A model generated the notes under the pieces. The model saw only the letters and a program-made list of their open reading frames with translations. It was not told where the DNA came from and ran no database searches. The translations under genes were made by a program, and so were the position numbers. From assembly GCF_964204645.1 (NCBI RefSeq), contig NC_134033.1, positions 16,252,655-16,316,654 of the forward strand: DNA of 64,000 nt, written 5' to 3'. Source of the DNA: Tubulanus polymorphus (Eukaryota > Animalia > Nemertea). Positions 39,601 to 64,000 of the stretch are shown here, piece by piece. Numbering within the stretch: position 1 is the stretch's first letter; each line of letters opens with the position of its first letter.

Positions 39601-42600
39601 TCAGTGAAAATCAACTAACTTTAACTCAGAGTTAACTCTAACTCACAACTGCGGAACCGAGTCCAGTTTATCATATATAAGCAACTTAATACAGAAACAG
39701 CATCAGGTACTTTAAACGTCCTAGGGCGCGTTCTTTGCTAGTGCTTTGCTTAGAAATCGAGTAGAAATAAAAAATTCTTACTTCTCAATGACGCACGCAA
39801 AAATGACGTGACCATTACCACAAGCTCCGGCCACTTGTGTGCTGTCATGTGACCAGGAAATATTGAATATGCTTCCTGTATTTGGCTTCTCCAAACCATA
39901 CGACCACTGTGTGTGCGAAAAAACATCGATTAGTTCAAAATACTATATTGAGAATAAATCCCCGGTTTATGGGTTCTAATCCCGGTGGTTCTTTCTGCGT
40001 CTCATCAATTAAGGGTTCATGGGTTCAGCGGTGCGGGACTCATCCTCTGGTCCTTTCATTGAACCCAGCTAGGCGCCGCGCGTTTAAACCCATTAAGAAA
40101 TATTCGTTATTCAAAATCAACCTAATAGTATCGTTGGCGCTCCCTGGAATACTTACCCCGCTTTTATCGCAGAGTCTGAGCGTGTTGTAGGAACCGACTG
40201 CGAATAGATCACCGTCGGGACTCCACGTCACCGACGTGATCGGGTAGTCATGGATACCGCTGTGATACATCAATCGGCCGTAACAATCCCATACTTTGTA
40301 TTTGCAATCCTCGGCGCCGGATAGAATCAGATTATTCACCGGGTTCCAGTCGAGAGTCAGAATCAATCCATCGTGAGCTTTCCACTGAAATAAACACAGT
40401 TCGATGATGTCATAGGGGGATTTATGGGGGCGGCTTCCCTTCCACCAGGGTCTAAAGAACAAGTAACTTTGCTAGTAGGCAATTTGATGATGTCATAGGG
40501 GGATTTATGGCAGCTTTCTTTCCATGAGGGTCTAAAGATCAAATAACGAGCAGACAATTTGATGATGTCATAGGGGGATTCATGGAGGCAGCCATGTTTC
40601 GTGATCGGCGATCTAACGATGTCGTAGAGGAATTTACGGACGCAGTCATCCTTTATCGTAGAACGGTCTATACATGAAATCACTATGATGTCATAGAGGG
40701 GTTTACGTAGGCAGCCATCTTATAAACGAGACACTTACGGTTAATGGTTTAGCGTTTGCTTGTAGAGGTTTAATCACTAACGTTCGTCCGTTTGTGTAAA
40801 GAACTTGATCAGAATCCGGTCCCCAAGCTAAAGCGTAAACCGGTGAACCTAAAAATACCAAACAAAAAACATTGACGTCTTAAATGAGTTTAAGTCTTCT
40901 ACGGATAGGGGGGCCATCATCGCGATTTGACAGATCATGGAATTCAAAATTCCCTGACTCTTGATAAAAAACTTCTCCCATCAAGTAATAAAATATCCTC
41001 AATAGGGGCTGTTTCTGATCAAGAGGTACGTTGTGCCACTCATCACCAGCAAGAACAACAAACCAGAAATCTAAATTCTCTGATTAAATAATAAGATATC
41101 CTCAGAGGGGACTGTTTCTGATCAAGAGGTTCCTTGTGCCACTTGTCACCACCAAGAACAACAAGACACCAAAAATTCAAATTCCCTGATTAAATCATAA
41201 GATATCCTCAGTGGGGGCTGTTTGTTATCAAGAGGTTCCTTGTGCCACTTGATACTGCTGGGAACAAAAGAGCAGAAATTCCAATTCCTCGACTTTCCAA
41301 GCAATGAGTCAGCAGCATATAATGAATCAATAATAGACCTGTTAAAACCCTGGGTGTCCTGGCAACATGTTCTTATCTATACTCACTGCTCTGTGTTAAC
41401 GTTGAACGTAACATTCCGCTTCGAGACCAGATCTTCACTTGTCCGTCTTCACCAGCTGAATTCAAACAAACATTACGTATAAATTCATTAACGGCTTCAA
41501 CGTTTTTGGGGTCAGTTGCTTACACTCTGGGTGTTAAAGGTTAACCACCGGATGAAGTAAATACCAATAAACCGCCATTCTAATCGTCGCCATATCAGTT
41601 ATCTTACGGTTAACTTTTGAGCAGAAGCACCCTACAGAGACTCAGGTTAAAATTAACAGGGTGGCCAATTTTATTCGACTTCACTTTTCCCAGACTATAT
41701 ACGTTGTTTTCCCTGAATCAATCCGTTTAGAATCCAATCGATTAACACAGTCAAATATGTAAGATGCAGACAATCTGGCAATCTCAACAATCTCAAAAAT
41801 TTCCCTGGCTATTCCCGGACTTTTTAATGAAAAGAAAATTGCCTGACTTTACTCTGATTTCAAGTTAAGTGGCCACCATGCTGATACAAATAATGGTACA
41901 AATAATCCACGGATAACAATGCAGTTTTGACGAAGTGTGGATGATCAGTTATGTCAGTTATCAGGGTCCAGTTCCGCAGTTCTGAGGTAGGACTTGACTT
42001 GGAGTAAACTCATTGAAAGTGAACTAATTTTAACTCGGAGTTAACTCTAACTCGCAACTATGGAACTGGGTCCTGACGGTTAAGTTTAACCCGCTTTCGA
42101 GTGACTGGACTTCTCGCAGAGCATTAGATTATTAAATTCATACCGGTAGCGTAGGCCGTTCCGTCGAAACTCCAGCGTCCGGAGAGAACGGCTCCGCGAT
42201 GAGCGTCGATACTCTTCTCAATACGACCAGTACGGGTTACGATGTGGAACTTGCCTGCAACAGATTATCTCGATAATTTATCAAAAAGACGATATTTAAC
42301 TGTAAAAGTCATCATAGTTGTGATGGTTGTTATGTTGATGACTTATCCAAATGTTAAAATTGAAAATACCAAATTGGGACTCAAAATAGAGATGACTTCA
42401 GTAATGTGACAACTTATCGATATGATGACTTAAACTTAGTAAATGAATTGGAAACAAAAATCGAGAGGACTTCAGTAATGTTATTACTTTACCGATTTTG
42501 ACCGCATAATAAGCTAGAGTTGACAATGGATCAATAAACCAGTCAAATTGTCACGGTGACAATTTGACATAAACCAGATTGGGGTGTCTACCGTTTGAGA

Positions 42601-43570
42601 ATCTGGTTTATGGTGACAAAAGTTGTGACAACTTTGAGTTTGACTGCATTATAAGGTAGAGTTAGAGAGATACGCCCCATTTTCGAAAACATTTTCAAGT
42701 ATCTCAAATACTTACCGTCGGTAGCGGTTAATGCGAATATATCGGAAGCCGCTTGTTTTTTCGAGGCTCCCCCTCCACCGCTGCCTTTCGGGAACCAATG
42801 CATGCTGATAGCATACAGATCAGCCGGCAGGTTCACTAGGGTCGACGTCTCGCCGTTCACGAGATTCCAACGCAGGATTTTATGGTCGTCGCCGCCGGAG
42901 TAAGCCTCCTCCGGAGACGTCCATCCGACGCAGCTCACCAGCTCCGCGTGTGAAAATCGCCGTCAAGGAGAACGACGTTTCAAAAAAATTCGGACGCAAT
43001 TACTTTTCGGCTTTCCCACCAGATGGCGTGACGAGCAATCAGTATTATAAATTCCAACAAATTTAGTCATGTAAATATTGATAGAAACAAACGTATTTGT
43101 ACATATTGTAGTCTTAACCCTTTCAGTGCTGACTAATTAATACCCTATAGTGCTAGAGAAAATTTGAAAATTCTAAAAAATTCCACCCTAGTGTGTTGAA
43201 CAATGGGAATACCACTATAGTGCCTCTAAACCGCGGTGCAGTGTTAGTTACTAGTATTTCACTATGTTTGACAGGTGCTGCCATTTTTCAATAGAGATAA
43301 TTACAAATTACATCAATACACCGCAGTGCGGTGTACTAGCAAAATCCATCACTGATTTATACACCGCACTGCGGTGTAGACGCACTGAAAGGGTTAACAA
43401 AATCGGCGTTGAATTCCAATTTCTTTTTGAATGTTAATAATTAAACTGTAAACCTAACACCTATTTATGTAAATAAATAGGTAATATATGGCAGAAGAAT
43501 TACAATATTCGGAGGAACTGTTGAAAAGGATATGTTTAGGATCTTTACTCAAAGTTGTTTTAAATCTCAT
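33686..43570 (-). CDS. IFT80: Intraflagellar transport protein 80 (WD40), 18 coding exons
   Basis: Exons (minus): 43534-43570, 42716-42949, 42144-42254, 41387-41455, 40739-40848, 40157-40384, 39782-39906, 39168-39341, 38994-39068, 38180-38343, 37575-37639, 36827-36962, 36302-36449, 35657-35828, 34789-34878, 34506-34678, 33939-34062, 33686-33844. [90 protein letters not shown] are collinear with vertebrate IFT80. Confidence 0.97.
34082..34300. repeat. GA-rich low-complexity tract in IFT80 intron
   Basis: Purine-rich gagaggag tract. Confidence 0.9.
34905..35595. repeat. ~102-109-bp tandem satellite (same family as 20905-21545) in IFT80 intron
   Basis: About 6 units of ggtgaagcactgaacacatgtgaagtgtggacgatcagttt. 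Confidence 0.92.
37690..38130. repeat. ~51-bp tandem repeat related to a dispersed element
   Basis: ttaagaccagtctaagctcatttcagttttataaccaatct units; reverse complement of agactggtcttaagttgttagattggctatagaac at ~995-1065, 18050-18145 and 51070-51200. Confidence 0.85.
38700..38970. repeat. 18-bp tandem repeat (ggtggaactggatctaga)
   Basis: Tandem units matching the tgtggaactgga terminus of the abundant MITE. Confidence 0.85.
42950..43533 (-). other. U12-type (minor spliceosome) AT-AC intron of IFT80
   Basis: Minus strand: AAA C|ATATCCTTTT ... TTCTCCTTGAC-ggcgatttt-CAC|AC GCG GAG CTG; removal restores PK-H-AELVSC. Confidence 0.95.
43114..43397. mobile_element. TTAA-flanked piggyBac-like MITE inside the U12 intron
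   Basis: ttaa-ccctttcagtgc ... gcactgaaaggg-ttaa: perfect 12-bp TIR plus TTAA on both sides. Confidence 0.85.
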
Positions 43571-43599
43571 TTTTGATTCTTCTGAAGCTTAAAAAACAA

Positions 43600-44660
43600 A
43601 TAAACAATCTATTAATGAAAATACATACAATGAAGTTTACAATATTTACAGGGATTAGGTCTGAGGCTGAACAGGGCCGGGTCCTAGTCAGTAACCTGTC
43701 TGTGGTTTAGTTTCACGATTGGATATTTTCACAAACCTCATCCGATTATAAAAAAGCTTACCACCAACGATTAGGTAACTAACTAGGCCGGGTCCGGAGT
43801 CCGAAGGCCTGGAGGGCACGCAAAAAAGGAATGGTCAGGAATATCAAGTATCAAGACGCAGTTATCAAAATTCACACTAAACCAAGTTACTTCATGTTAG
43901 ATTTATGAAATGATAAGATACAGAGAACTGAAAGTGGTCCGTTGTAGCAAGCCTCTGTAGTACATATTCCGGGTACGAAATTAATTAATAATTGCTATTG
44001 AATTGAATTGATTCACATTCTTCTTGTTTTCTGATCTTCAGGCAAAACGATAGAAATGTTTCCGACTTAAATCAGGTTTTAATTAAGCCGGTTAAGATCA
44101 AGAAAGTTAAGAAATGTAAACTTTAAATACCATAAGACCGAAATGCACTGTTTTACAGTCGGAACGGTCGATATTTATGACAGTTCAGATTTTGTTGTCA
44201 GAAACCAGGAAGTGGAATGCGAAGGGAACGCCGGCTGGTGCTGCCACCTGCTGACGTTTCGACACTGAATTCTCATTTTAGTTTGGCTGCTTAGTGCGTT
44301 GCCCATAGTATCTAACGGTCATATACGGCGTGGTTTATAATGACCGATTCTCAACCACTTGGCATGCAGCGCGAGAAGTTACCAACACCCTCTGAAATAC
44401 TTTTTAACACATTTAAGGCTTGTTGATACAAGACGTAACGAAATTGTAAAATCTTTGCTAAAATCCAGAAGAAACAACAAAAACGATTATTTAGTCGATT
44501 TTTACGTTTTATATATCATATTTATGTGAAATAAAGCTATTGTAGACATTGAACTTGTCCGATCTTATTTCTTTTACATTTTAGAACTGTCAGGATTTCG
44601 CCCCGCTTTCGCTTCTTCGACAATAAAATTTAATTGAGATCTTTCTAGGCGGATTGAAAT
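43600..44660. promoter_or_regulatory. Putative bidirectional promoter region between IFT80 and the BAR-like gene
   Basis: Divergent start codons 43570(-) and 44665(+); ETS-like caggaagtg ~44206, CTCF-like gctgccacctgctga ~44240, imperfect X-box-like gttgcccatagtatc 44298-44312. Confidence 0.5.
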
Positions 44661-44664
44661 AAGG

Positions 44665-47600
44665 ATGTTTTCTGGTTTAAAGAAAGTTCTGAAGAATGTC
44701 AGCTCATCAGGGAGTTACGCGGGGCTGAGTTTGATGATTTTTCAACATAAATTAGTTATCGATAATTTAGAAAAACTGGGTTCACTGCAGAAAGAAGGTA
44801 AAAACCTAGAAAATCATGTCAAATTCAATTAAGAATTTATTACGTATTCCATCATTGGAAACTATACTTGATTCAAATTTTTCTAAAATCTGATTTTGAA
44901 TACGGACCAGAGTCGAATTGATTGAAATTGGGAATCTGAGCCCAAAATTTTACTTAATTTTGCCTCTGAGACTGAGTTAAAAACTACTTTTTACGATAGT
45001 CTTAAAAAAGAATGTCCTATCATTTTATGTCATCAGATTCAGGAACTGTAGGCCACAGGCCTTTCACTTGATCGAATCGCTTCTATTAGATTTGCAAATA
45101 TTTTCATAATATATTTCTTTGCAAAAATTAGCGGATGGGTGGAGCGAGGTGGCAATGTCAAATTTCAAACTTTTGTATCTGTATCTGTATCTATATAGCA
45201 GAAGTTGCAAGTTGATTTTCCTGCTCTTGTTTGTAGCAATTGAAAGCGAAATAAAATGGGCAATTACGGAAGAAAATATCGTCTTACGAGAACTGATTCT
45301 GAAACTAAACGAAATGAATCTAATGGTGATGAATATCTGGCAGGAATACGTGTCACAGGTTCGATTCGACTTGGCCGCTCTTAACATCGCTTAAGCACTT
45401 AATCATTTCTAAAACAGGGGCTCATACCAGGGCCCAGTTTCACAATGGGTTTAACTCCTAAATCGATTTAATTTCTACATTAATTCAGTTTATCGTAAAA
45501 ACGATTTAGGCCTTAATCCTTTTCGTGAAACTGGGTCCAGAGTTGTAGGTAGTGTAAAAACGATAATCCGTTTATCCAGTGTCCATAATATAATGTATAA
45601 TAACATATATTATAGATACTGGATTAACAGATTATCGGTTTTACATTACCTACAACTCTGATACGAGTCCCTGCGATTTTTAACGGTGCATCATGAATAC
45701 ATATATGTAAAATCATCCAAAATTGAAACAAGACCGTGTTTTCTCAATTGCAAATGATATCATTTATGTCTTTTAATTTTATTTTCTCTGAAATAGATAA
45801 GATAGGCCTATATAGAGCAAACAGCAGTTTAGGTGTACAACGTCATGTACCAACGAGCTAATTCTTTAATAACACGAGTGGAAAGGTGACCTAAACTGCA
45901 GTTAGACACCCAAAGAATAATTTGAACTTTTAATTAACTCTCTCAATCATGAAAAATTAACCTCCGAAATATTTCTTGATTGAGAGAGTTAATAAAAAGT
46001 TCAAATTATTCTTTGGGTGTCTAAGTGCAGTTTAGGTCACCTCTTCACTCGTCTTATTAAAGAATTAGCTCGTTGGTACATGATGTGGGAAACCTTAACT
46101 GCAGTTAGACACCCAAAGAATAATTTGAACTTTTAATTAACTCTCTCAATGATGATTGAGTGTTTATTGATATACGTCGTTCCTTCTTGTTTCTCGTTTC
46201 AGTATAAAATCTACCGAAGCGTCTTTCAATCGATTCACGAACGAAGAGGAAAATTAAACGAGTCTCGAAAACAACTCGGACTCGGCGAAATACGTAAAGA
46301 GAAAGCTCGAAAACATGTTAGTGAAAATTAACCCTTTAAACAGCGGCCGGGACAGTTTCACTAAAACAACTCAAAGTTCTGTACAGAACACATTTTTAAG
46401 AAGTGACCAATCATAGGAGTCTATTTGATAAAGCTTAATGAAGAAAAATCGATTTGAGTTCAGCTTTTTTTAAAACTCGCTCCAACTGAGGGTCTCTATT
46501 TCTTAGATTTGCTTAATTAGTACAACGATTGGTTTCAATTTTGGTTTTAGTTGGAAAATATTTCAAAGAAAAACGACGTGCAGAAAACTGAAAATGCAAA
46601 ACAAGAGCTAAATACGGTAATTTGAGATACTCTTCGAATTAGGTAGAATGCTTACTGTAGATCTCAGTTTTGATATTTCGATATTTTCTCTCTTCTTACC
46701 CCAACCCCCAGGTCACCGATCAACATAAACGGATTAAGACTCAAGTGAAAATGGAACAGGACGAACTTGAAAAATTCACGGTGAGTTAATTGAAAAACTT
46801 TTGAAGGCATCCATCTCTGATCTGTGTACGTTAGAATTTTGATTGAAAAACTTGTAAAGCAGAACTAATTTGTTCTATTTCTACCTCTAGATTTCGTGAA
46901 GTTCCCATTTTGAATTCATGGTAAAATTAACTGATATTTTTGTTGTTTCATTGATGGTGTTAAATGTTAGACAGTGTTTTTAATAGTTTTAGCTTTAGAT
47001 ATTTTATTCTACGCCAAGCTATTTTGAATCCCATTCTGTTTTGTTTTTAGATTTGCATTGTTTTTTTCTTGTGTCGCATAAATCCTAGAAATGCTATTTC
47101 CTATTTTGCCAGATAACAGATTTTGAGCCAAAAACTTCTGATTAAGTGTTTTTGTGAATTTGGTGAATTGATGAGTCACAAATAGTCTCAGTGATCAAGG
47201 CTGTAATTAGCAGGGGGGGGCAAATTTTGAAAAACTTTTGCAAATATTATATTTCTGTTACGTATTTTGTATTTCTGATAGGCATACAAAATATTTGGTA
47301 CGTAGAAATACGTCTAAATGTAGAATGTATGTATTTCTGATGATGTACCTGGTATTTGTCCGATGAAGTATTTGTCTGATGATGTATTTGTCTGATGACG
47401 TATTTGTCCGATGACGTATTTGTCTGATTACGAATGTTGTAATGTATTTGACTGTTTACAGGTATTAAATGTACGCGATGCGTTGATGAACTGGTCGTCT
47501 GCTTGTCACGCGTTCCACAAAAAGTCGTCGTGCGCGAATCGAACCCGAGTTCAAATAGTCGAATGTTTTCTGCCTGGACTGAAAAGCGTAGAAGACCCGG

Positions 47601-50600
47601 TCAATATAACGATAGGTATAACCAAACAACGCGTCGTTAAGATTTGATTAAATCCCGCACTAAAAAATGAAAAGAGCCCGAGTTTCCTTGATTTCCTTTA
47701 AGGCAAAAAAAATTGACACCTTGTTTCTCTGCTCTGCTGAGCTTAAATGTTGACCCGGCCGGCCGCCTATCTACCCTGAACATTACTTCTTTTTAAATCG
47801 TGATTTATTTTACCAAAACAGACCCGGCCGCTATAGAAATGAACTGATTACAAATTTCATTACATTTTACAAAAATGACCCGGCCGCTGCGGAGAAACAA
47901 GGTATCATTTTTGTTTAGTCATGTTAGGCTAAACGAAACTAATGTTTTGAGTTTATCGGAATAATCATCTTAAGTAAAACTAGTGTAAGGAGATGTGACA
48001 CTAATATTCCCATAGATGACTACAGACATACCGGTAGTCGAAATGTAGAATAAACTTCTCTAGCTCAAGAAAACATTTCGGACTCCTTCTTTTTCTTAGT
48101 GTACAGGGATTTTATATCCCTGTTGATACCTAGATTCTCAGTGCCCGCTAAACTAATCCAATTCATCGGTTCTTTGACATTCGAATTCATCTACTTCAGG
48201 AATACTAGCTTTATGATAACAAAATTATAAGAAAGATCCAAATCAATTAATTCCTTTTCAGCTCAAGTGAACAGCGCGTTAGCCATACGTAAACTATCGG
48301 ATAAACTCAAAGTACCGATGGTGCTCACCCCGAAAGACAAGGACGCCGGGGCATCGTTTCAGGTGATTATATCCACCTTAATTCTTCACACTATTCGTCA
48401 GGTTTTCCGCTGATGCTCGGACGTGAAACAAAGAAACAATTTCATGAATTTGATGTTTCCTTTCGCAGGCGTTTCAGTATATTTCCGGTAAAGAATTAGC
48501 TTTGGTCGAATTTTCGCACGAAAATCGAAACGCTAAGAGTAAGTTCTGATGGTTTTTCATTCGTGTTCTCTGTTTTAATTTGATTCCCGAAGGCAAAGTT
48601 CGTTCAGTCAGTTAACTCTAGACTCTGCTGTACTTTTTGATACAAGAAAGTCAAGAGTTAACCAGTTGATAGCTTCAAGACATAAATGACAATTGAAAAT
48701 CCAGGTCTGGGGCTGCAGTTGCTCAGAAGATGGTTAGAGTTAACAAGTGTGGATAGTTGACATAGTGACAATTGAAATTTCATTGTTATCATTGCATTTT
48801 TCCACATTTATCTTTAACCAACTTTTTAACATGTGACCCCAGGATCCAGTTCCACAGTTGTGAGTTCAATTTACAAGTGACCCCAGGATCCAGTTTCACA
48901 GTTGTGAGTTCAATTTGACTGTAGAGTTAAACATTGTTTAACATTGAAAAAGAACTAATTTTAACCCTGAGTTAACTCTATAACTCACAACTGTGGAACT
49001 GGGTTCTGATTAGTGTTCGCTCATTTTCAACCTTTAAGTCAAATTCTAACCGATATCCGTTGATCCGGTTCATCTGACCGTTTGAGTTCCAATTTAAAAT
49101 TCAACAGTCGAAATGTTTTTTTTTTTTTTTTAAATTTTCACTAGGTAGATCAGTGAGCGTAGGGGTCGCCGAGGAACACAATCACCGGCGTCAAATATCG
49201 TTGCCGTCGGATACGAAACAACAATCGAATACGTTGGATAATAATAATCACCGTTCGAAGCCGTTACCTCTTCCTCGTCCGGCGTGGTCGATGGAAAACC
49301 TGGCGGCGCCACCGTCGTCGTCGGCGGTCGCTGATCGGTTTCTAAAACAACGTCGCAGCGGCAGCAATGATAATTCACTACCGACTCGATTTACCGACAG
49401 TCACTACCGCGCGAGGTCTTCATCTTACGGAGCAACACAATTCAACGATAATAATCTGAACAAGGTATGAAATACATCGCGAAATATGGCTGCCTACATC
49501 AACTCCCCCTATGACATCATCAAATTATCTGTTACAGCAAATATGGCTGCCTCCATTATTCCCCCTATGACATCATCAAATTATCCGTTACAGCAAATAT
49601 GGCTGCCTCCATTTATCCCCCTATGACATCATCAAATTATCCGTTACAGCAAATATGGCTGCCTCCATTAATCCCCCTATGACATCATCAAATTATCCGT
49701 TACAGCAAATATGGCTGCCTCCATTTATCCCCCTATGACATCATCAAATTATCCGTTACAGCAAATATGGCTGCCTCCATTAATCCCCCTATGACATATA
49801 TTACTAGTATTAGAACTGCGTTTATTTGCAGCCAAAATCATCTGGGCTGAAAATCAGCTCGCACGCTCGGTCGATGGAGAATCTAGAACGAGGCTCATCA
49901 AGCGTCTGCTCCGATGAAGATGTCAGCAGCGTTCATGATTATTTACCGATTTTACCGGAACTTCCGAAAAAAACAGGTAAACAACACGTTCCCGCTGCGG
50001 GCAGACGTATTACGACTAGCGGGGCTGGATGAAAGGGATATAACAGTAAATCTCGCCTAACACGGATGAACTTGGACCGGTAAAATCAATCCGGGCTAAG
50101 CTTAGTCCAAGTTTAGAATAGGAAAATATGTTAGGAAGTTAGAAAACTGATTTTGTTTTTGTCAGACTTAGTCAAAAAGTCAAGAGTTGGCCATATCTGA
50201 GTTAGGCTAGGTTTTGTAGGTACACCGAGGGGAACAGTTCACTGTGTCTGAGGGGGAACACTCCACTTGTGTCTGTTTCATTCTAGAAATCCCTTTCTTT
50301 TTCTATAAACTCCGGGCTAGATTCACCCCTGGCAGGTGAGTATATCGTTGATTTTATTTTCAGTCCGTACGAATAGTTGGACGGTCGTTTACGGAGACGA
50401 CACTCCAGCGGTTCCTCCGACGCCTCCACCTCGGTTCCCTCCTCCGAGGTGTCCGGTATCTAGTCCGCGATCTCGTATGACTCGGTCAACCGGTGACCTC
50501 ATCGGTAAGCGGCGCCATCTATATTTCACTCGGCACTGAAAACAAGTTTTTAACTTGGAATGAAATAATTTATTATGGCGCAGTTGGAGTAAAACTGTCG

Positions 50601-50947
50601 ACTTGTGAAACTAAATATTCATTAGTGAATAAAACATATTAAATATGGTTATTATTTCAGATGAATTGAATGCTGATGATAATAACAGAAATCAGTCGAC
50701 GACTGATCGGTCGACGCCGTCTTCATCAGAGCTGAGTTTTAACTTCGAAAATGTCGAACGGCGCCGCGCGCAGTCGACCAGCGACCTGCTCGGCGGGAAC
50801 AGCATGGACCGGTCTCAGTCGACCAGCGACCTGCTCGGCGGGGACAGCGTGGACCGGTCTCAGTCGACCAGCGACCCGCTCAGAGACAGCGATGGTTTCA
50901 GTTTGTCGTACGAACGAATTTGGAAAACCGGTCTAGGTTCGTGTTGA
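44665..50947 (+). CDS. Uncharacterised protein: N-terminal Pil1/Lsp1- or FAM92-like BAR domain plus disordered Ser/Arg/Pro-rich tail; 12 coding exons
   Basis: In-phase GT-AG exons 44665-44797, 45237-45358, 46203-46316, 46551-46616, 46712-46780, 47462-47615, 48262-48362, 48469-48538, 49145-49464, 49832-49976, 50364-50504, 50661-50947. First ~205 aa helical/coiled-coil. Gene model is more secure than the domain call. Confidence 0.75.
45843..46083. repeat. Long inverted repeat (~107-bp arms, ~27-nt loop) plus partial third copy to ~46149
   Basis: tcatgtaccaacgagctaattctttaataa...ctctctcaatca / tgattgagagag...ttattaaagaattagctcgttggtacatga. Confidence 0.9.
49483..49797. repeat. ~57-bp tandem repeat (aatatggctgcctccatt.atccccctatgacatcatcaaattatccgttacagca)
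   Basis: About 5.5 units; relatives at 16020-16255 and, inverted, at 40400-40720. Confidence 0.92.
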
Positions 50948-52489: not shown

Positions 52490-55400
52490 ATGACGCGCAG
52501 TCTCTTAACGTTATTACTCATTCTACTAATGAAACTGTCGTCGGTTCAGACGACTGATCGGATCTCTACCGATCAACCGTCTGTAACTGTCAGTTCACGG
52601 TGTAACAATACGTGGTTTTCACTCGATTCTACGTCCGGTTACATCGTTTCACCGAATTATCCGTCGTTTACGCGCGGTGTTGAATGTTATTGGTTCGTCA
52701 ACAGCTCTTTACCGGGTACCTTTCGCGTCCAAGTTTACTACGACATCGAGCCGTCTATATTCTGTAGAGATAACTATCTTCACATCAGCGATTCTGATAA
52801 CTTACTGTGCGGTGCTGGAAAACGATTAGATATTTACCGCAGTAATTCATTATCGTTGATGTTTAAGAGTGATGTAAATGATGTTGCGAAAGGAAGTCGA
52901 GTTTATGTATTTTATCGTTTGGAGGAAAAACATCTGAAAACTGTTCACGACTGTTCCTCAAAATATATAAAACAATTACAAACAACTTTTGAAACTGGTT
53001 ACAAATTCACCATCCACATGAACAATTGTCGCCTCTTCCGGCTGGAGTGGTCCGGGATACCAAAGGGTTTCGGTATGAATTTGACTTTTGAGAAAATAGA
53101 TTTCAGATTACGACAACCAGGTTTTCATGTGACCGTTCAGATTTATGACGGATGGAACTCAAGTGAACCTATAATGAATATACGGGAACAAACCGGACAT
53201 CCGCCCATCTCTATTTACACTAAAACTAACAAAGCTATCGTCACTTTTTCAATAAAACAGGTCCGAGTGACTCTCAAAACTAATCTATTCGTTAAAATGT
53301 ATAGAATATCTGATTGGAATATTTCTAATCCATCGATTCCGATCTATAGAAACAAATCCGGAGTGCTCATTCCTGGTGATAGGCCGCACGTAATAACTCA
53401 GTCTAAACGCTTATACTGCTGGTCTATCACAGCTGAAATACTGCAGTACGTCGTCTTCAACTGGTCACGTGATCTCGTCACTTCCGGTGACGTCATCGGT
53501 GTTTATAAACTGGAAGGTTTAACGGTTGTCGGAACTGATATTTTACTCGGTAAAAACTACCTGGAATCTTTAAGTGTAAAATCTGACGGATTTCTCGTGA
53601 TATTGTGTTTACTGTTATCAGAGAATTTTGTCGGGAAATCGTTTAGAAATTCAACATTGATCGACTACAAAATAGAATCATTGAAAGAAACAGACGTCAC
53701 AGTGGAAAATAAAAAAGTGAGTAAAACAGCACGAAAATATGTCGACAGTTTTTTGTGTGTTTTTTTCTCAATGACAATGACGAAATGTTTAAAACTTTTA
53801 AATTTGACTCGAGCTACCAACTTTCTTTCGAACATAATTCGTTTAGAATGGTCAAGTGGCAATATTTTGCTGTAGAATGGTAAATATAAATAAGGCATGT
53901 AATATTTCATTGGATGCTGATGATCTACTTCATGTTTGCATCTTTTGTAGGTACCACACCATCATAGAGTGTCACATTCTAATCTGTTCCCCAGATATTC
54001 CAAACGGAAGTTACAATATCGTATCAGCAGATTTGCACTCAGTTCGAAAGTCGACATCTATGAGTATGGATTGAAACTAACAGTTTTATCAGAGAATTGT
54101 GAGAGAGCTGGATTTTATATATATGATGGTGGTAATTTTACAGCTAGACGCTATGGTCCGTATTGTACTGCTGGTCTTGGAAACTATGATGGTCGATCTG
54201 TTGTCAGTCTGATTACATCAGGAGGACCGGTAACTGTAGTAACATACGCTTACAACTGGCATGATATACTAGTTACTGGTTATCTCAAGTTAGTTCCTAC
54301 CGACTGTGACGGATATGTTCTACGGGAGGGAGAACGCCAGATCACTATGACGTCACATTGTCTCGTGATTACACCTGAAAATCGACGCCAACCGATAGAA
54401 AACATAGATGTATTATCAGAACACGAATATCAAATTGACAGATGTTATCGTAAAGCTAGGAATCCCTGTTCAGCGTTAAGTCTCAATAGTCACGTGTTTA
54501 ATACCAGTCTCGTATTAAACCATGTGAAATTATTAAACACTAAATATGAATTCTGGAGGACACCACTAATGATTGTATTACGACGTAATTGTCAGAAATT
54601 AAAACGAAGTCAATTGATTCCACGTTTTATAGGAGGGAACACGAGAAATAAAATTCATTGTGGACTCGTGCAGTCACCGGACTTCCCTGGATTAACTACC
54701 GATACTGCAAAATCATTCTATGTTTTTTCTTTTTCTACCGACATAAATATAAATTATTACATCAGATTCCTGTTTAAATTTATCGGACAAACATCATGCT
54801 CTAAATCTACTCATTACCGCATCAGGGAATCAATATTACTGACACAAATTATCAAAATATTTGACGATCCAAACGATTTATTTTCCGGGTTTACAGAAAC
54901 CCGTCATATAACAAAAATATGTGAAAATAACGCAGTAACAGGACTTGTATTGTACAGTCTACTCGGGTATGACATAAGTTTTTCGACTGAGGGGTACATA
55001 CCAATATTTCAAATTCAATACACTTTAGAACAATCTCCTTTATTGAAACATCGAATTAATGGCTGCCGATCAGATTTTCTAGATCCTGGTGTTTCGTGTA
55101 TTAGACACATCAAACATGAACGTCTGAATTGGGAGAACGCTGAAATTTACTGTCAACAGAAATATGGAGGACATCTTCTCAGTATCAACTCTCAACGCGA
55201 AATGATGGCCGTGAAAAAGCTGTTCGCTACAAAACTGCTTCATGAGGCTTATTCACAGGCGGGACTTATTGTGATGATTGGATTGAAATGGCAGGTAAAT
55301 ACAATCTATTGTATAGATTTGACAATTACGTAAGGTATATGTGTTTGTGTAATTTTTCCAAATACAATTAGAGCTAAGTCAAATTTCAGAAAGAATGTTT

Positions 55401-58400
55401 AATAACGTATATAACAGGAAGTGTTTACTTGTTTTTAAAGGAGTCCAGTGGTTATTACTCGTGGTCTGATGGGAAACCGTTGAGTTACACAGAGTGGTTT
55501 AAACCTGCTGATGTTAATGAAACAATACCAGAAGTTATTCTAGGATTGATATCTCCTCAACTAAAACAACCGATAAATGACGTCAATATGCCATGTGCGG
55601 CGATGATACTGAATAATCCACGAGGATCAGCGAACTGGGTTCGATTCCCGTGCCAAATTATACAAACGCATACAACATTCATTTGTGAAACAGAGAGAAA
55701 CGACTTTAATACGTCATCACAAAACGATACAACTGAAATAACACGCAACAACTTTAAACGATTTAACTCCACGTGTTTAAGAGGCTGGATTCATATAGAA
55801 GCGCAATGCTATCAGATACATACAGCCTGGAAAACGCTCCATACTGAAAGTTTAACAATCCAAACAGCGAGAGAAATGTGTCTTACAATCGGCGGAGACT
55901 TAGGTATAATAACATCTAATATTGATATTCAGAATTTGATAAATGTTTTTCACTATCAGCATCAATATGGCGCTATACTGACTAATCATACAAGCGGAAG
56001 AATTGTGGCAATAAAACCAGTTGTAATCAGAGATTGGATAACGTATATTAAAACAGTGAAATGGTCAGTGACTGCATTCGATAATGGGACAGATGTAGCG
56101 CATTCCGTGCTATGTTCCTATGATGTAACTGGTGAAGAGTTAGCTTCTATAAGCGGATGTAAATCGTGGCAGTTTCAATGTAACGATCAAAGATGTATCA
56201 GCGACCATCGTGTATGTGATACTAGAAACGACTGTCAACACGGTGAAGATGAACTCGATTGTTCGGGTTCAAACTTAGACAGTCAGTTCCAGTGTTCGGA
56301 TGGACGAGTTATATCAGTGAGTACTGTGTGTGATTTTGTACGAGATTGCGCTGACGGATCAGATGAGAACTCGTGCTATCATACTTTATGTTCCTCAGAA
56401 CAGTTTAAGTGTAAAAACGGACAATGTGTGGGTAAATATAAACGATGTGATGGACTGGTTGATTGTAAAGATAAATCCGATGAGATCGGCTGCTCTTCCG
56501 ACGAATGTAACGGGTTTTTGTGTGTAAATGGTGAATGTATCAGTTCTCTGTTGTATCGGGATGGTGTTGTAGATTGTGGCGGGGACCTCGAAGAAGATGA
56601 AATAGTGCCAACAAACATAACGATTAAACCACAACTTCACTGCACTACAGAGAACTACTGCACGACCAATTTCACTTCACTCTGTACAGAATCGGATAAA
56701 CAAAGATGTTCATTCAATTCTCCTCATTGTTACGCGAGAAGAGATAGATGTATTTTAGAAAGAATGTCGACAGGTTTTCCTGTTTGTAGAAGACTCGAAC
56801 ATTTACTGAATTGTAATGAGTTTGAATGTCCAGCTGGTACAGTGAAATGTCCATCGTCTTACTGTATACCGATTAGACACGTGTGCGATGGTCGATCTGA
56901 TTGTCCTCATTCAGAAGATGAATTCAAATGCGAAACGTTTTCGTGTCCAGGAATGTTTAAATGCGGTGATGAACACAGATGTATTCCTCAGTCGGAAGTT
57001 TGCGATGGCGTCGTTAATTGTAAACACAACTCGGATGACGAGGCTTTCTGCGACGTCACGTGTCCTAACTACTGTAAATGTCAAGGTCGTTTGATTGATT
57101 GTGAAAACGCTTCTTTATCTGATATTTCTAACATTTTTGCCGCGTCGACTCGCGTTCTGATTTTATCGAATAACCGAGTTAGATTTAATGAATCGACATT
57201 TTCTCCATTTTTATACCTTTTTATACTCAATATTTCCCGTAATGATTTATCTGACATTGTCTCCAACGCGTTTTCTAATCTACGCAATCTAAATATATTA
57301 GATCTGTCCTATAATCACCTAGTATCACTACATGCCGATACATTCACTGGTTTAAACAATTTAAAACAACTTTTACTCGCTGGAAATCCGCTGAGATATT
57401 TGGAAGATGGAAGCTTCAACGGTTTGACATCACTTCCGGTTATGGATCTACACGGTCTCTCTATATCGGTTCTTACTCGTAACGTATTCCGAGGTTTACC
57501 AGCGCTGAAATATTTGAATATCAGCAGTAACGCAATCAGATCAATATCCAGATACGCGTTTTCTGGGTTAAGTTCACTGGGAGTTCTAGATTTCTCCAAC
57601 AACTCACGGGTAATTTCTGTGAAAAATAATATCTTCAATAATTTGACGTCTTTATATTTTCTCGCTTCGGACGCGTATAAATTCTGTTGTATGGCGCCGA
57701 ATATTGACCGGTGTCTCCCGGATCCTGATCAATTCTCATCGTGTTCAGACCTCATTGAGAACACTGTCCTCACAGCTGTTATCTGGATCATCGCTTGTTT
57801 TACTTTCGTTTCCAATATTATCGTTATTTTATTTCGTTTTAGGTCGATTCGAATTTCATCGGAAACGCGAAATAAATCGTCAGATATCCTCATCATTAAT
57901 ATCGCGCTTTGTGATTTGCTGATGTCTGTTTATCTGTTTCTGATCGCTGCAACTGATCACGTTTATAAAGGTGTTTATTTTCTGAATTCTGAAACTTGGA
58001 CTCGCAGTTCATTATGCAGCGTTGCCGGAATTGTGGTGACGATATCTTGTGAAGGCTCTTTAACATTTCTCTTTCTCCTCACGCGTTTCAGATATTCGAA
58101 TATCGTCGATCCATTTTCTGGTAACCCGGTTTTATCCTCAAATATCATTATGATTCTGTCTTGTTTATGCTGGATATTTCTGAGTTTAATCGCCTTTCTT
58201 CCGCTGTCTCGGTCCTCATATTTCGGTGATAATTTTTACGGTAGCACAGGTATCTGTTTACCTATGAATTTAATATCTATAGATGTCAATGGTTGGCAAT
58301 ATTCGTTCGCTATATTCGCTGTATTAAACGCGATCATTCTCACTCTGATAATGATGTCGTACGCGCAGATGTACAAGTATGTATCCGGAAGCAGGTCCGG

Positions 58401-58665
58401 TTCGGGTAGAGCTGATCCTACAGAACTCGTTCTAGCTCGACGCAGTTTAGTCATCAATTTGTGTAATTTATTTTGCTGGTTACCGTTAATAATCGTCCAG
58501 TTGTGCGCCGTATTTTCGGTCGAGATACCGAACCAGGTCGCCGCTTGGCTGGCCGTTCTTTTCTTACCGATAAACTCAACTCTGAACCCACTTCTTTACA
58601 CTATTCTAACTATCGATATGAAATCCATACGAGCTCGAAACAAACGCAGCAAACCAATCAAATAG
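52490..58665 (+). CDS. GRL101-like LDLa/LRR GPCR with N-terminal CUB and C-type lectin domains (~1931 aa, 3 exons)
   Basis: Exons 52490-53716, 53951-55294, 55441-58665 (phase-0 GT-AG introns). Signal peptide; CUB (SGYIVSPNYP..CYWFV; IYDG..YGPYC); CTLD (LNWENAEIYC..GHLLSINS..WSDG..WVRFPC); many LDLa repeats (FQC..C..CD...DC.DGSDE); LRRs; hinge YKFCC..PDQFSSCSDL; 7TM ending LPINSTLNPLLY. Confidence 0.92.
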
Positions 58666-61391: not shown

Positions 61392-64000
61392 ATGACGCGC
61401 AGTCTCTTAACGTTATTACTCATTCTACTAATGAAACTGTCGTCGGTTCAGACGACTGATCGGATCTCTACCGATCAACCGTCTGTAACTGTCAGTTCAC
61501 GGTGTAACAATACGTGGTTTTCACTCGATTCTACGTCCGGTTACATCGTTTCACCGAATTATCCGTCGTTTACGCGCGGTGTTGAATGTTATTGGTTCAT
61601 CAACAGCTCTTTACCGGGTACCTTTCGCGTCCAAGTTTACTACGACATCGAGCCGTCTATATTCTGTAGAGATAACTATCTTCACATCAGCGATTCTGAT
61701 AACTTACTGTGCGGTGATGGAAAACGATTAGATATTTACCGCAGTAATTCATTATCGTTGATGTTTAAGAGTGATGTAAATGATGTTGTGAAAGGAAGTC
61801 GAGTTTATGTATTTTATCGTTTGGAGCAAAAACATCTGAAAACTGTTCACGACTGTCACTCAAACACAATAAAACAATTACAAACTATTAAAACTGGTTA
61901 CAAATTTGCCATCTACATGAATAGATTTTGTCGCCTCCTCCAGCTGGAGTGGTCCGGAATACCAAAGGGTTTCGGTATGAATTTGACTTTTGAGAAAATA
62001 GATTTTAGATTCGAACAACCAGGTTTACGCGTGACCGTTCAGATTTATGACGGATGGAACACAAGTGAACCTATAATGAATATACGGGAACAAACCGGAC
62101 ATCCGCCCATCTCTATTTACACGAAAACTAACAAAGCTATCGTCACTTTTTCAATGAAACAGGTCCCAGTAGTTCTCAAAACTAATCTATTCGTTAAAAT
62201 GTATAGAATATCAGATTGGAATATTTCTAATCCATCGATTCCGATCCATAGAAACAAATCTGGAGTGCTCATTCCTGGTGATAGGCCACATGTAATAACT
62301 CAGTCTAAACGCTTATACTGCTGGTCTATCAGAGCTGAAATACTGCAGTACGTCGTCTTCAACTGGTCACGTGATCTCGTCACTTCCGATGACGTCATCG
62401 GTGTTTATAAACTGGAAGGCTTAACGGTTGTCGGAACTGATATTTTACTCGGTAAAAACTACCTGGAATCTTTAAGTATAAAGTCTGACGGATTTCTCGT
62501 GATATTGTGTTTACTGTTATCAGAGAATTTTGTCGGGAAATCGTTTAGAAATTCAACATTGATCGACTACAAAATAGAATCAGTGAAGGAAACAGACGTC
62601 AAAGTGGAAAATAAAAAAGTGAGTTAAACAGCACGAAAATATGTCGTGAATTCATTGTATTGATCCAACTTTTCTTGTTGGATACCAAGAGAATTATGTG
62701 TTCATATTGCGGTTAATGAGAATGAAGAATAGACAATTAATGAATTGAATATTGAGGACTTACTCTAGGTTTTCATCTATTGTAGGTTAAAAATGATCAT
62801 CAAGTGTCATATTCTAGTTTGTTCCCCATAAACTCGGAATGGAAGTTACAATATTGTATCAGTAGATTTGCACTCCGCTCGAAAGTCGACATCAACGAGA
62901 ATAAATTAAAACTAACAGTTTTATCAGAGAATTGTGAGAGAGCTGGATTTTATATATATGATGGTGGTAATTTTACAGCTAGACGCTATGGTCCGTATTG
63001 TACTGCTGGTCTGGGAAACTATGGTCGATCTGTTGTGAGTCTGATTACATCAGGAGGACCGGTTACTGTAGTAACATACGCTTACAACTGGCATGATCTA
63101 CTGGTAACAACTGGTGACCTTGTTTCCCTCATGTTTGTTCCTACCGACTGTGACGGGTATGTTCTACAGGAAGGAGAACGTCAGATCAATATGACGTCAC
63201 ATTGTCTCGTTATTACACCAGAAAATCGACGCCAACCGATAGAAAACATCGATGTATTATCAGAACATGAATATCAAATTGACAGTTGTTATCGTGGAGC
63301 CAGGAATCCCTGTTCAGCGATAAGTCTCAATAGTCACGTGTTAAATACCAGTCTCGTATTAAACCATGTGAAATTATTACGCACTGAATATGAATTCTGG
63401 AGGTCATCACTAATGATTGTATTACGACGTAAATGTCAGAAATTAAAACGCGGCTTTCGGGCTGTTATTGGTGGAAGGAGTGAGATAGATCATTGTGGAC
63501 TCGTGCAGTCACCGAACTTCCCTGGATTACCTACCTATACTGCACAATTATTCTATGTTTTTTCTTTTTCATCCGACAAAATCATAAATTATTACATCAG
63601 ATTCCTGTTTAAATTTATCGGACAAACATCATGCGATAAATCTACTCATTACCGCACCAGGGAATCAATATTACTGACACAAATTATCAAAATGTTTGAT
63701 GATCCAAACGATTTATTTTCCGGGTTTACAGAAACTCGTCATATAATAAAAATATGTGAAAATAACGCAGTAACAGGACTTGTATTGTACAGTCTACTCG
63801 GGTATGACTTGTATTTTGAGTTGTCAGAGTTCATGCCAATATTTCAAATTCAATACACTTTAGAACAATCACCTTTACTGAAACATCGAATTAATGGCTG
63901 CCGATCAGATTTTCTAGATTCTGGTGTTTCGTGTATTAGATACATCAAACATGAACGTCTGAATTGGGAGAACGCTGAAATTTACTGTCAACAGAAATAT
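61392..64000 (+). CDS. Tandem paralog of the GRL101-like receptor, 3'-partial
   Basis: Exon 1 61392-62618 (1227 nt, same length as copy 1); exon 2 starts 62786 (tgtag|GTT AAA AAT) and appears open to the window end (..LNWENAEIYCQQKY); ~240 bp upstream also duplicated. Confidence 0.9.

Follow-up and report, generated by a model that had tools for sequence, protein, structure and literature searches.

A window of 64,000 nucleotides from the ribbon worm Tubulanus polymorphus (contig NC_134033.1, positions 16,252,655 to 16,316,654 of the forward strand) contains LOC141911015, a real, expressed gene of 12 exons on the plus strand (44665–50947) that is listed by NCBI as an uncharacterized protein under accession XP_074658059.1. 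We read its product as an N-BAR-like protein that is invisible to Pfam and has the fungal eisosome proteins Pil1 and Lsp1 as its nearest, very divergent relatives, a reading to which we give a probability of roughly 55%. The presence of a BAR-superfamily domain of whatever kind is quite probable. What survives all comparisons is that the protein may work like Pil1/Lsp1 and may descend from them. Two isoforms exist, X1 (P0003, 573 aa) and X2 (P0001, 526 aa). P0001, which was recovered by searching exon 6 alone against 1.84 billion proteins (100% identity over residues 169–219), was taken to represent the spliced protein in the later searches.

Two comparisons bring Pil1 and Lsp1 to the fore. 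When residues 1–275 were searched with language-model features, the nearest cluster was an unannotated one from arthropods (0.91, 183 of 256 features in common), and the Pil1/Lsp1 clusters scored 0.90 with 187 and 190 of 256 common features, where at least 170 are typical of true family matches by the search tool's own calibration. All ten of the ten best family-bearing matches fall in one family or clan, and the clusters of FAM92 (0.80, rank 18) and BAR (0.78, rank 30) lie behind those of Pil1. The same search limited to unnamed clusters yields one weak arthropod cluster (0.85). The second comparison used Foldseek (3Di+AA) with the first of two predicted models against 350,542 chains; here Lsp1 (3plt) and Pil1 (8qb9, 8qb7) occupy ranks 1–4 and 6, with Vipp1 at ranks 5 and 10 and amphiphysin at rank 11. 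Pil1 had been named in the initial annotation of this DNA before any search was made, and this one small family then came first among all families by two methods; a chance agreement is therefore unlikely.

The predicted architecture of the protein is consistent with an N-BAR design. AlphaFold, run without an alignment (model 1), places helices at residues 2–13, 18–53, 59–129, 133–194, 219–235 and 248–259. The N-terminus is basic and amphipathic, as had been proposed from the sequence: residues 1–12 carry a net charge of +3, and their hydrophobic moment is 0.67, compared with 0.28 ± 0.13 over all 12-mers in the protein. Helix 2 of the following three-helix region carries a net charge of +7, and residues 276–526 look disordered and contain 19.5% Ser. 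A BAR-type domain behind the amphipathic helix is plausible, and the low-confidence model aligns over residues 15–198 with many solved BAR domains at a root-mean-square deviation (rmsd) of 3–4 Å.

Placed on the window by tblastn, P0001 occupies eleven exons with the same coordinates as the GT–AG exons that were read from the DNA, and the twelfth exon (50364–50504) is supplied by isoform X1 (P0003). By these two results, the gene reaches 50947 and extends beyond the end at 47615 that had been assigned to it initially. The six spliced GT–AG exons at 44665–47615 are real, being confirmed both by the tblastn mapping and by spliced contigs, and the spliced N-terminal peptide quoted at that time corresponds to residues 21–189 of P0001, letter for letter; however, they represent the first half of the gene, with six further exons downstream and the stop codon at 50945–50947. 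The exons are as follows.

44665–44797, plus strand: exon 1, with the start codon, the basic amphipathic helix (residues 1–13) and the start of helix 1, ending in phase 1 (sequence, GT donor, tblastn of P0001 residues 1–52, run X2 contig, hydrophobic moment 0.67).
45237–45358, plus strand: exon 2, end of helix 1 (Trp52 region), loop and first part of helix 2 (AG/GT borders, tblastn of residues 45–87, run X2 depth in the exon and not in the adjoining introns).
46203–46316, plus strand: exon 3, central part of helix 2, in which lies the motif Y-x-x-Y-R-x-x-x-x-S-I ... G ... S-R that the initial annotation had likened to Pil1 (DNA reading, tblastn).
46551–46616, plus strand: exon 4, end of helix 2, tip loop and start of helix 3 (junction 46616/46712 in a run X2 contig, tblastn).
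46712–46780, plus strand: exon 5, helix 3 (junctions 46616/46712 and 46780/47462, tblastn with 100% identity).
47462–47615, plus strand: exon 6, end of helix 3 and linker, the predicted BAR-like core stopping near residue 198 (about 47551) (100% match to P0001 residues 169–219, junction to 48262).
48262–48362, plus strand: exon 7, short helix (residues 219–235) after the core (run X2 junctions, tblastn, predicted secondary structure).
48469–48538, plus strand: exon 8, the final short helix of the prediction (residues 248–259) (73 nt of a run X2 contig between exons 7 and 9; a 3-nt border ambiguity is settled by the GTAAGT donor).
49145–49464, plus strand: exon 9, where the Ser/Arg-rich disordered tail begins (run X2 contig piece 49145–49462).
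49832–49976, plus strand: exon 10, disordered tail (GT..AG junctions 49464/49832 and 49976/50364).
50364–50504, plus strand: exon 11, a cassette exon that codes for 47 aa, including a proline-rich stretch.
50661–50947, plus strand: exon 12, the last coding exon, with an acidic Ser-rich motif present twice and the stop codon (tblastn of residues 431–526).

No sequencing run is recorded as RNA, yet run X2 contains spliced contigs of the gene. One of these (1546 nt) skips at least seven introns at GT..AG borders, including 46616/46712, 46780/47462 and 47615/48262, and contains the cassette exon. A second contig (386 nt) begins at 44641 and follows the genome as far as the donor of exon 1 (44795); in the same run exons 2 and 3 are covered, and the first two introns have no depth. 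It follows that LOC141911015 is transcribed and that its splicing agrees with the model. Cassette exon 11 is included in isoform X1 and in the run X2 transcript contig and skipped in isoform X2 (P0001).

Contigs of runs X3 and X4 depart from the assembly at four positions in exons (45286, 45307, 46316 and 46553), with three synonymous changes and one exchange of Leu124 for Phe, and at about a dozen positions in the adjoining introns, a pattern that agrees weakly with constraint on the coding sequence. Parts of the introns (45400–45800, 47600–48000, 48600–49100 and 49600–49800) show contig depths from thousands to about 100,000 in four of four runs and thus represent high-copy interspersed repeats. 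The segment 45850–46140 reads as a long inverted repeat that resembles a miniature transposon.

Several results weigh against kinship with Pil1. The initial annotation had proposed a profile search as a check, and this showed no clear preference for Pil1: no BAR-clan family of Pfam, Pil1 (PF13805, curated cut-off 27 bits) included, matches at E ≤ 10 on the six single exons, in the full protein, in residues 1–270 or in eight sub-regions, and a search of the six-frame translated genome with the Pil1 profile at E ≤ 10 was likewise blank. The blank exon-wise result carries weight because the same method recovers the genuine FAM92/CIBAR gene of this animal, in five exons with E-values down to 5e-8:

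G000:C3:4231054–4233791 (L009–L011), minus strand: canonical FAM92/CIBAR gene, five exons that match PF06730.

A phmmer search of 177,635 PDB sequences at E ≤ 10 with residues 1–275, residues 15–115, exon 2 and exon 3 returned neither Lsp1 nor Pil1. Judged by these sequence searches, the protein lies outside the Pil1 family as Pfam defines it. A degenerate DNA pattern for a Pil1 motif has seven matches in the genome compared with nine for a control; the one match in an open frame (L016) was followed up and rejected, as it is not a Pil1-like gene.

The two comparisons that favour Pil1 both read a single sequence and hence are not fully independent. Shuffled proteins attain a feature score of 0.9 in 4–10% of cases, and the score was calibrated on whole proteins, not on parts such as residues 1–275. 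The structural models are poor, with a predicted local distance difference test score (pLDDT) of 56–63 for models 1 and 2, and AlphaFold is confident only for the hairpin of residues 90–165. The matches of low-confidence model 1 to Lsp1 and Pil1 have E-values of 0.13–0.24, template modelling (TM) scores of 0.36–0.46 and 16–17% identity. The ranking also depends on the model: with model 2, Foldseek places CHMP2A–CHMP3, PspA, Asgard ESCRT-IIIB and Vipp1 at the top (E 0.10–0.5), followed by Pil1/Lsp1 at ranks 16 and 22, with Pil1 at 22% identity over 161 columns. The structural check against Lsp1 that had been suggested initially shows no clear preference. Lsp1 and Pil1 are also absent from the top 50 of the geometry-only alignment (VIA), and an atlas fold search gave TM scores below 0.35 only, which are meaningless. 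The original idea of a Pil1/Lsp1-like BAR protein therefore stands in part: a BAR-type domain is plausible and Pil1/Lsp1 are nearest by language-model features and by Foldseek with model 1, but membership by profile or phmmer fails.

The alternative that survives best is a BAR-superfamily domain without special kinship to Pil1, that is, a fast-evolving, lineage-restricted offshoot of the classical animal BAR/N-BAR proteins (amphiphysin/Bin, CIBAR-like or arfaptin-like). In our models, geometry alone fails to separate Pil1 from other BAR domains: VIA aligns Bin1, amphiphysin, FAM92A (9uhd), ACAP1 and SNX1 equally well, all with Z-scores of 10–11 and an rmsd of 3.0–3.4 Å. The head-to-head arrangement with the cilium gene IFT80, with an X-box-like site in between (see below), would suit a ciliary BAR protein. 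On the other side, the Pfam profiles BAR, BAR_2/3, Arfaptin, FAM92, IMD and FCH have no match at E ≤ 10 in the protein or its sub-regions, and the FAM92 and BAR feature clusters (18th and 30th) and amphiphysin in Foldseek (11th) all rank behind Pil1/Lsp1. We considered LOC141911015 as the CIBAR orthologue and rejected this candidate because the true FAM92/CIBAR gene sits on contig C3 and PF06730 does not match the protein; the resemblance of helix 3 to FAM92/CIBAR that was noted initially comes down to generic BAR likeness. Taken as a whole, an offshoot of the classical BAR proteins seems to us rather unlikely.

The protein could also be a lineage-specific coiled coil or helical hairpin that forms no BAR dimer and has no membrane role, its likeness to Pil1 and BAR domains stemming from composition and long helices. 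The only sequence matches in Pfam and PDB are indeed noise-level coiled coils (Phage_scaffold, CC2-LZ and ZWINT), the confident part of the AlphaFold model is a hairpin, and shuffled proteins reach a feature score of 0.9 in 4–10 of 100 cases. Sequence relatives are equally lacking. Word searches of 5.8 billion proteins with P0001 residues 1–275 (E ≤ 1 and E ≤ 10) recover only P0001 itself, exon 6 matches only its own protein among the 1.84 billion representative proteins, the exon-2 open frame gives no candidate in a word search, a metagenome scan shows no relatives, and a paralogue search in the worm's own genome at E ≤ 10 finds nothing past coiled-coil noise. One further match from the protein searches (P0002) was rejected as a repeat artefact. 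However, the nearest family-bearing feature clusters consistently belong to one family or clan with high counts of common features, the family that had been named beforehand also comes first in the independent Foldseek search, and the combination of a basic, amphipathic N-terminus with three subsequent helices whose lengths are BAR-like is a specific design. We therefore regard a mere coiled coil as unlikely. A membrane remodeller of the ESCRT-III/PspA/Vipp1 superfamily, whose members also begin with an amphipathic helix and which would explain the N-terminal helix and long hairpin as well as the top matches of model 2 and the placing of Vipp1 with model 1, is highly improbable, because the matches of model 2 stem from a low-confidence fusion of helices 1 and 2 into one 113-residue helix, the Pfam profiles Snf7, PspA_IM30 and Ist1 have no match at E ≤ 10 in the protein or its sub-regions, and no such family occurs among the feature-space neighbours listed.

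We therefore return to a Pil1/Lsp1-like N-BAR protein and infer from it how the product might work. LOC141911015 would encode a peripheral membrane protein in which three helices (about 18–53, 59–129 and 133–194) make up a domain of about 180 residues that pairs into a crescent-shaped homodimer. The basic face of the dimer would dock on an acidic, phosphoinositide-rich membrane, and the N-terminal helix (residues 1–13) would insert into it as a wedge. Behind the three-helix domain follow two predicted short helices and then a Ser/Arg-rich, presumably disordered tail of about 300 residues. The protein might be regulated through phosphorylation of this tail, which is rich in serine, and through the choice between including and skipping the proline-rich exon. 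Of this picture, the gene model, its transcription, the helix pattern and the amphipathic N-terminus are shown by the analysis, and dimer formation, membrane binding and kinship to Pil1 are inferred.

The divergent upstream neighbour of LOC141911015 is IFT80. The start codons of the two genes are about 400 bp apart, that of IFT80 being placed near 44264 as the probable site. Between them, and upstream of both, lies an X-box-like site, at about 25 nt from the putative start codon of IFT80 and about 365 nt from that of LOC141911015.

40040–44264, minus strand: IFT80, of which a 140-aa open frame at 40043–40462 matches solved IFT80 (E 1.6e-40).
44298–44312, no strand assigned: RFX/X-box-like site with the half-sites GTTGCC and AGTATC and a 3-nt spacer.

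With the relaxed pattern GTNRCC-N(0-3)-RGYANC, this site stands alone in its part of the window and is one of four matches in the 64 kb on both strands; matches to the strict X-box pattern are at chance level within the window. The site is a hint, not evidence, that LOC141911015 might be co-regulated with the cilium gene IFT80.

Further downstream, the open frames in 52490–58665 and 61392–62627 are very long (461, 454 and 1078 aa) and free of introns, and they code for LDL-receptor class A repeats, leucine-rich repeats and the seven-helix end of a receptor. The first frame recurs as a near-identical copy that begins at 61392, and the locus thus represents a tandem duplication of an LGR-like receptor gene.

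A wider proposal, which we regard as less likely than not, is that animals have kept an eisosome-type BAR lineage. Ribbon worms and, judging from the feature-space neighbours, arthropods too would then have profile-invisible scaffolds related to Pil1/Lsp1, and the copy described here, which shares a 400-bp divergent promoter and the X-box-like site with IFT80, would shape or stabilise plasma-membrane furrows in ciliated cells. If this is true, an animal branch of Pil1 makes one ask whether animal cells have eisosome-like membrane domains, and annotation by profiles has missed an entire BAR subfamily. On a more cautious reading, LOC141911015 is the neighbour of a core cilium gene and encodes an N-BAR-like protein that had gone unannotated and whose tail is presumably regulated.

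Among the animal BAR proteins, CIBAR1/FAM92A (PF06730; PDB 9uhd) differs from the LOC141911015 product in that the latter has no FAM92 profile match and reaches only 0.80 in feature space. The N-BAR proteins amphiphysin and Bin1 (PF03114; PDB 2fic, 3sog) differ in that LOC141911015 protein has neither a profile match nor an SH3 domain and carries a disordered tail instead.

Pil1 and Lsp1 build stretch-sensitive membrane furrows in fungi; they assemble into a lattice and tubulate membranes in a manner that depends on PI(4,5)P2. The likeness of LOC141911015 protein to these eisosome proteins (PF13805; PDB 3PLT, 8QB7–8QB9) lies in the overall plan, in which a segment at the N-terminus that faces, or in the worm may face, the membrane precedes a BAR domain of about 200 residues, predicted in the worm, and a disordered tail, which is phosphorylated in yeast Pil1/Lsp1. 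Membrane binding of Pil1/Lsp1 requires the N-terminal segment together with a basic concave patch, and in yeast Pil1 the N-terminal 35 residues contribute to membrane binding and the conserved patch includes K130 and R133 (PMC3257569). By contrast, the worm protein has no PF13805 match and shows 16–22% identity in the Foldseek alignments, and its gene belongs to an animal, is rich in introns and encodes a far longer tail and a proline-rich cassette exon. The two proteins presumably align in one register from Leu-Ser near residue 21 via Trp52 to Tyr-x-x-Tyr-Arg, Ser-Ile, Gly and Ser-Arg, with gaps needed in helix 3. On the same assumed alignment, K130 and R133 of yeast correspond to Gln and His, with Arg/Lys adjoining.

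Pil1 proteins are a ubiquitous fungal family (PMC12470953), and direct Pil1 orthologues have been described as absent from animals (PMC10010689); our literature search found nothing on animal Pil1-like proteins. A parallel is Saccharomyces cerevisiae Ssp1, which is fungal, has a confident predicted structure and has been tested with mutants, whereas LOC141911015 protein is known from a low-confidence model. The Pil1-type BAR domain of Ssp1 is undetectable by primary-sequence comparison and was recognised from its predicted structure (PMC12470953). With Ssp1 there is thus an earlier case of a Pil1-type BAR domain being missed by sequence comparison.

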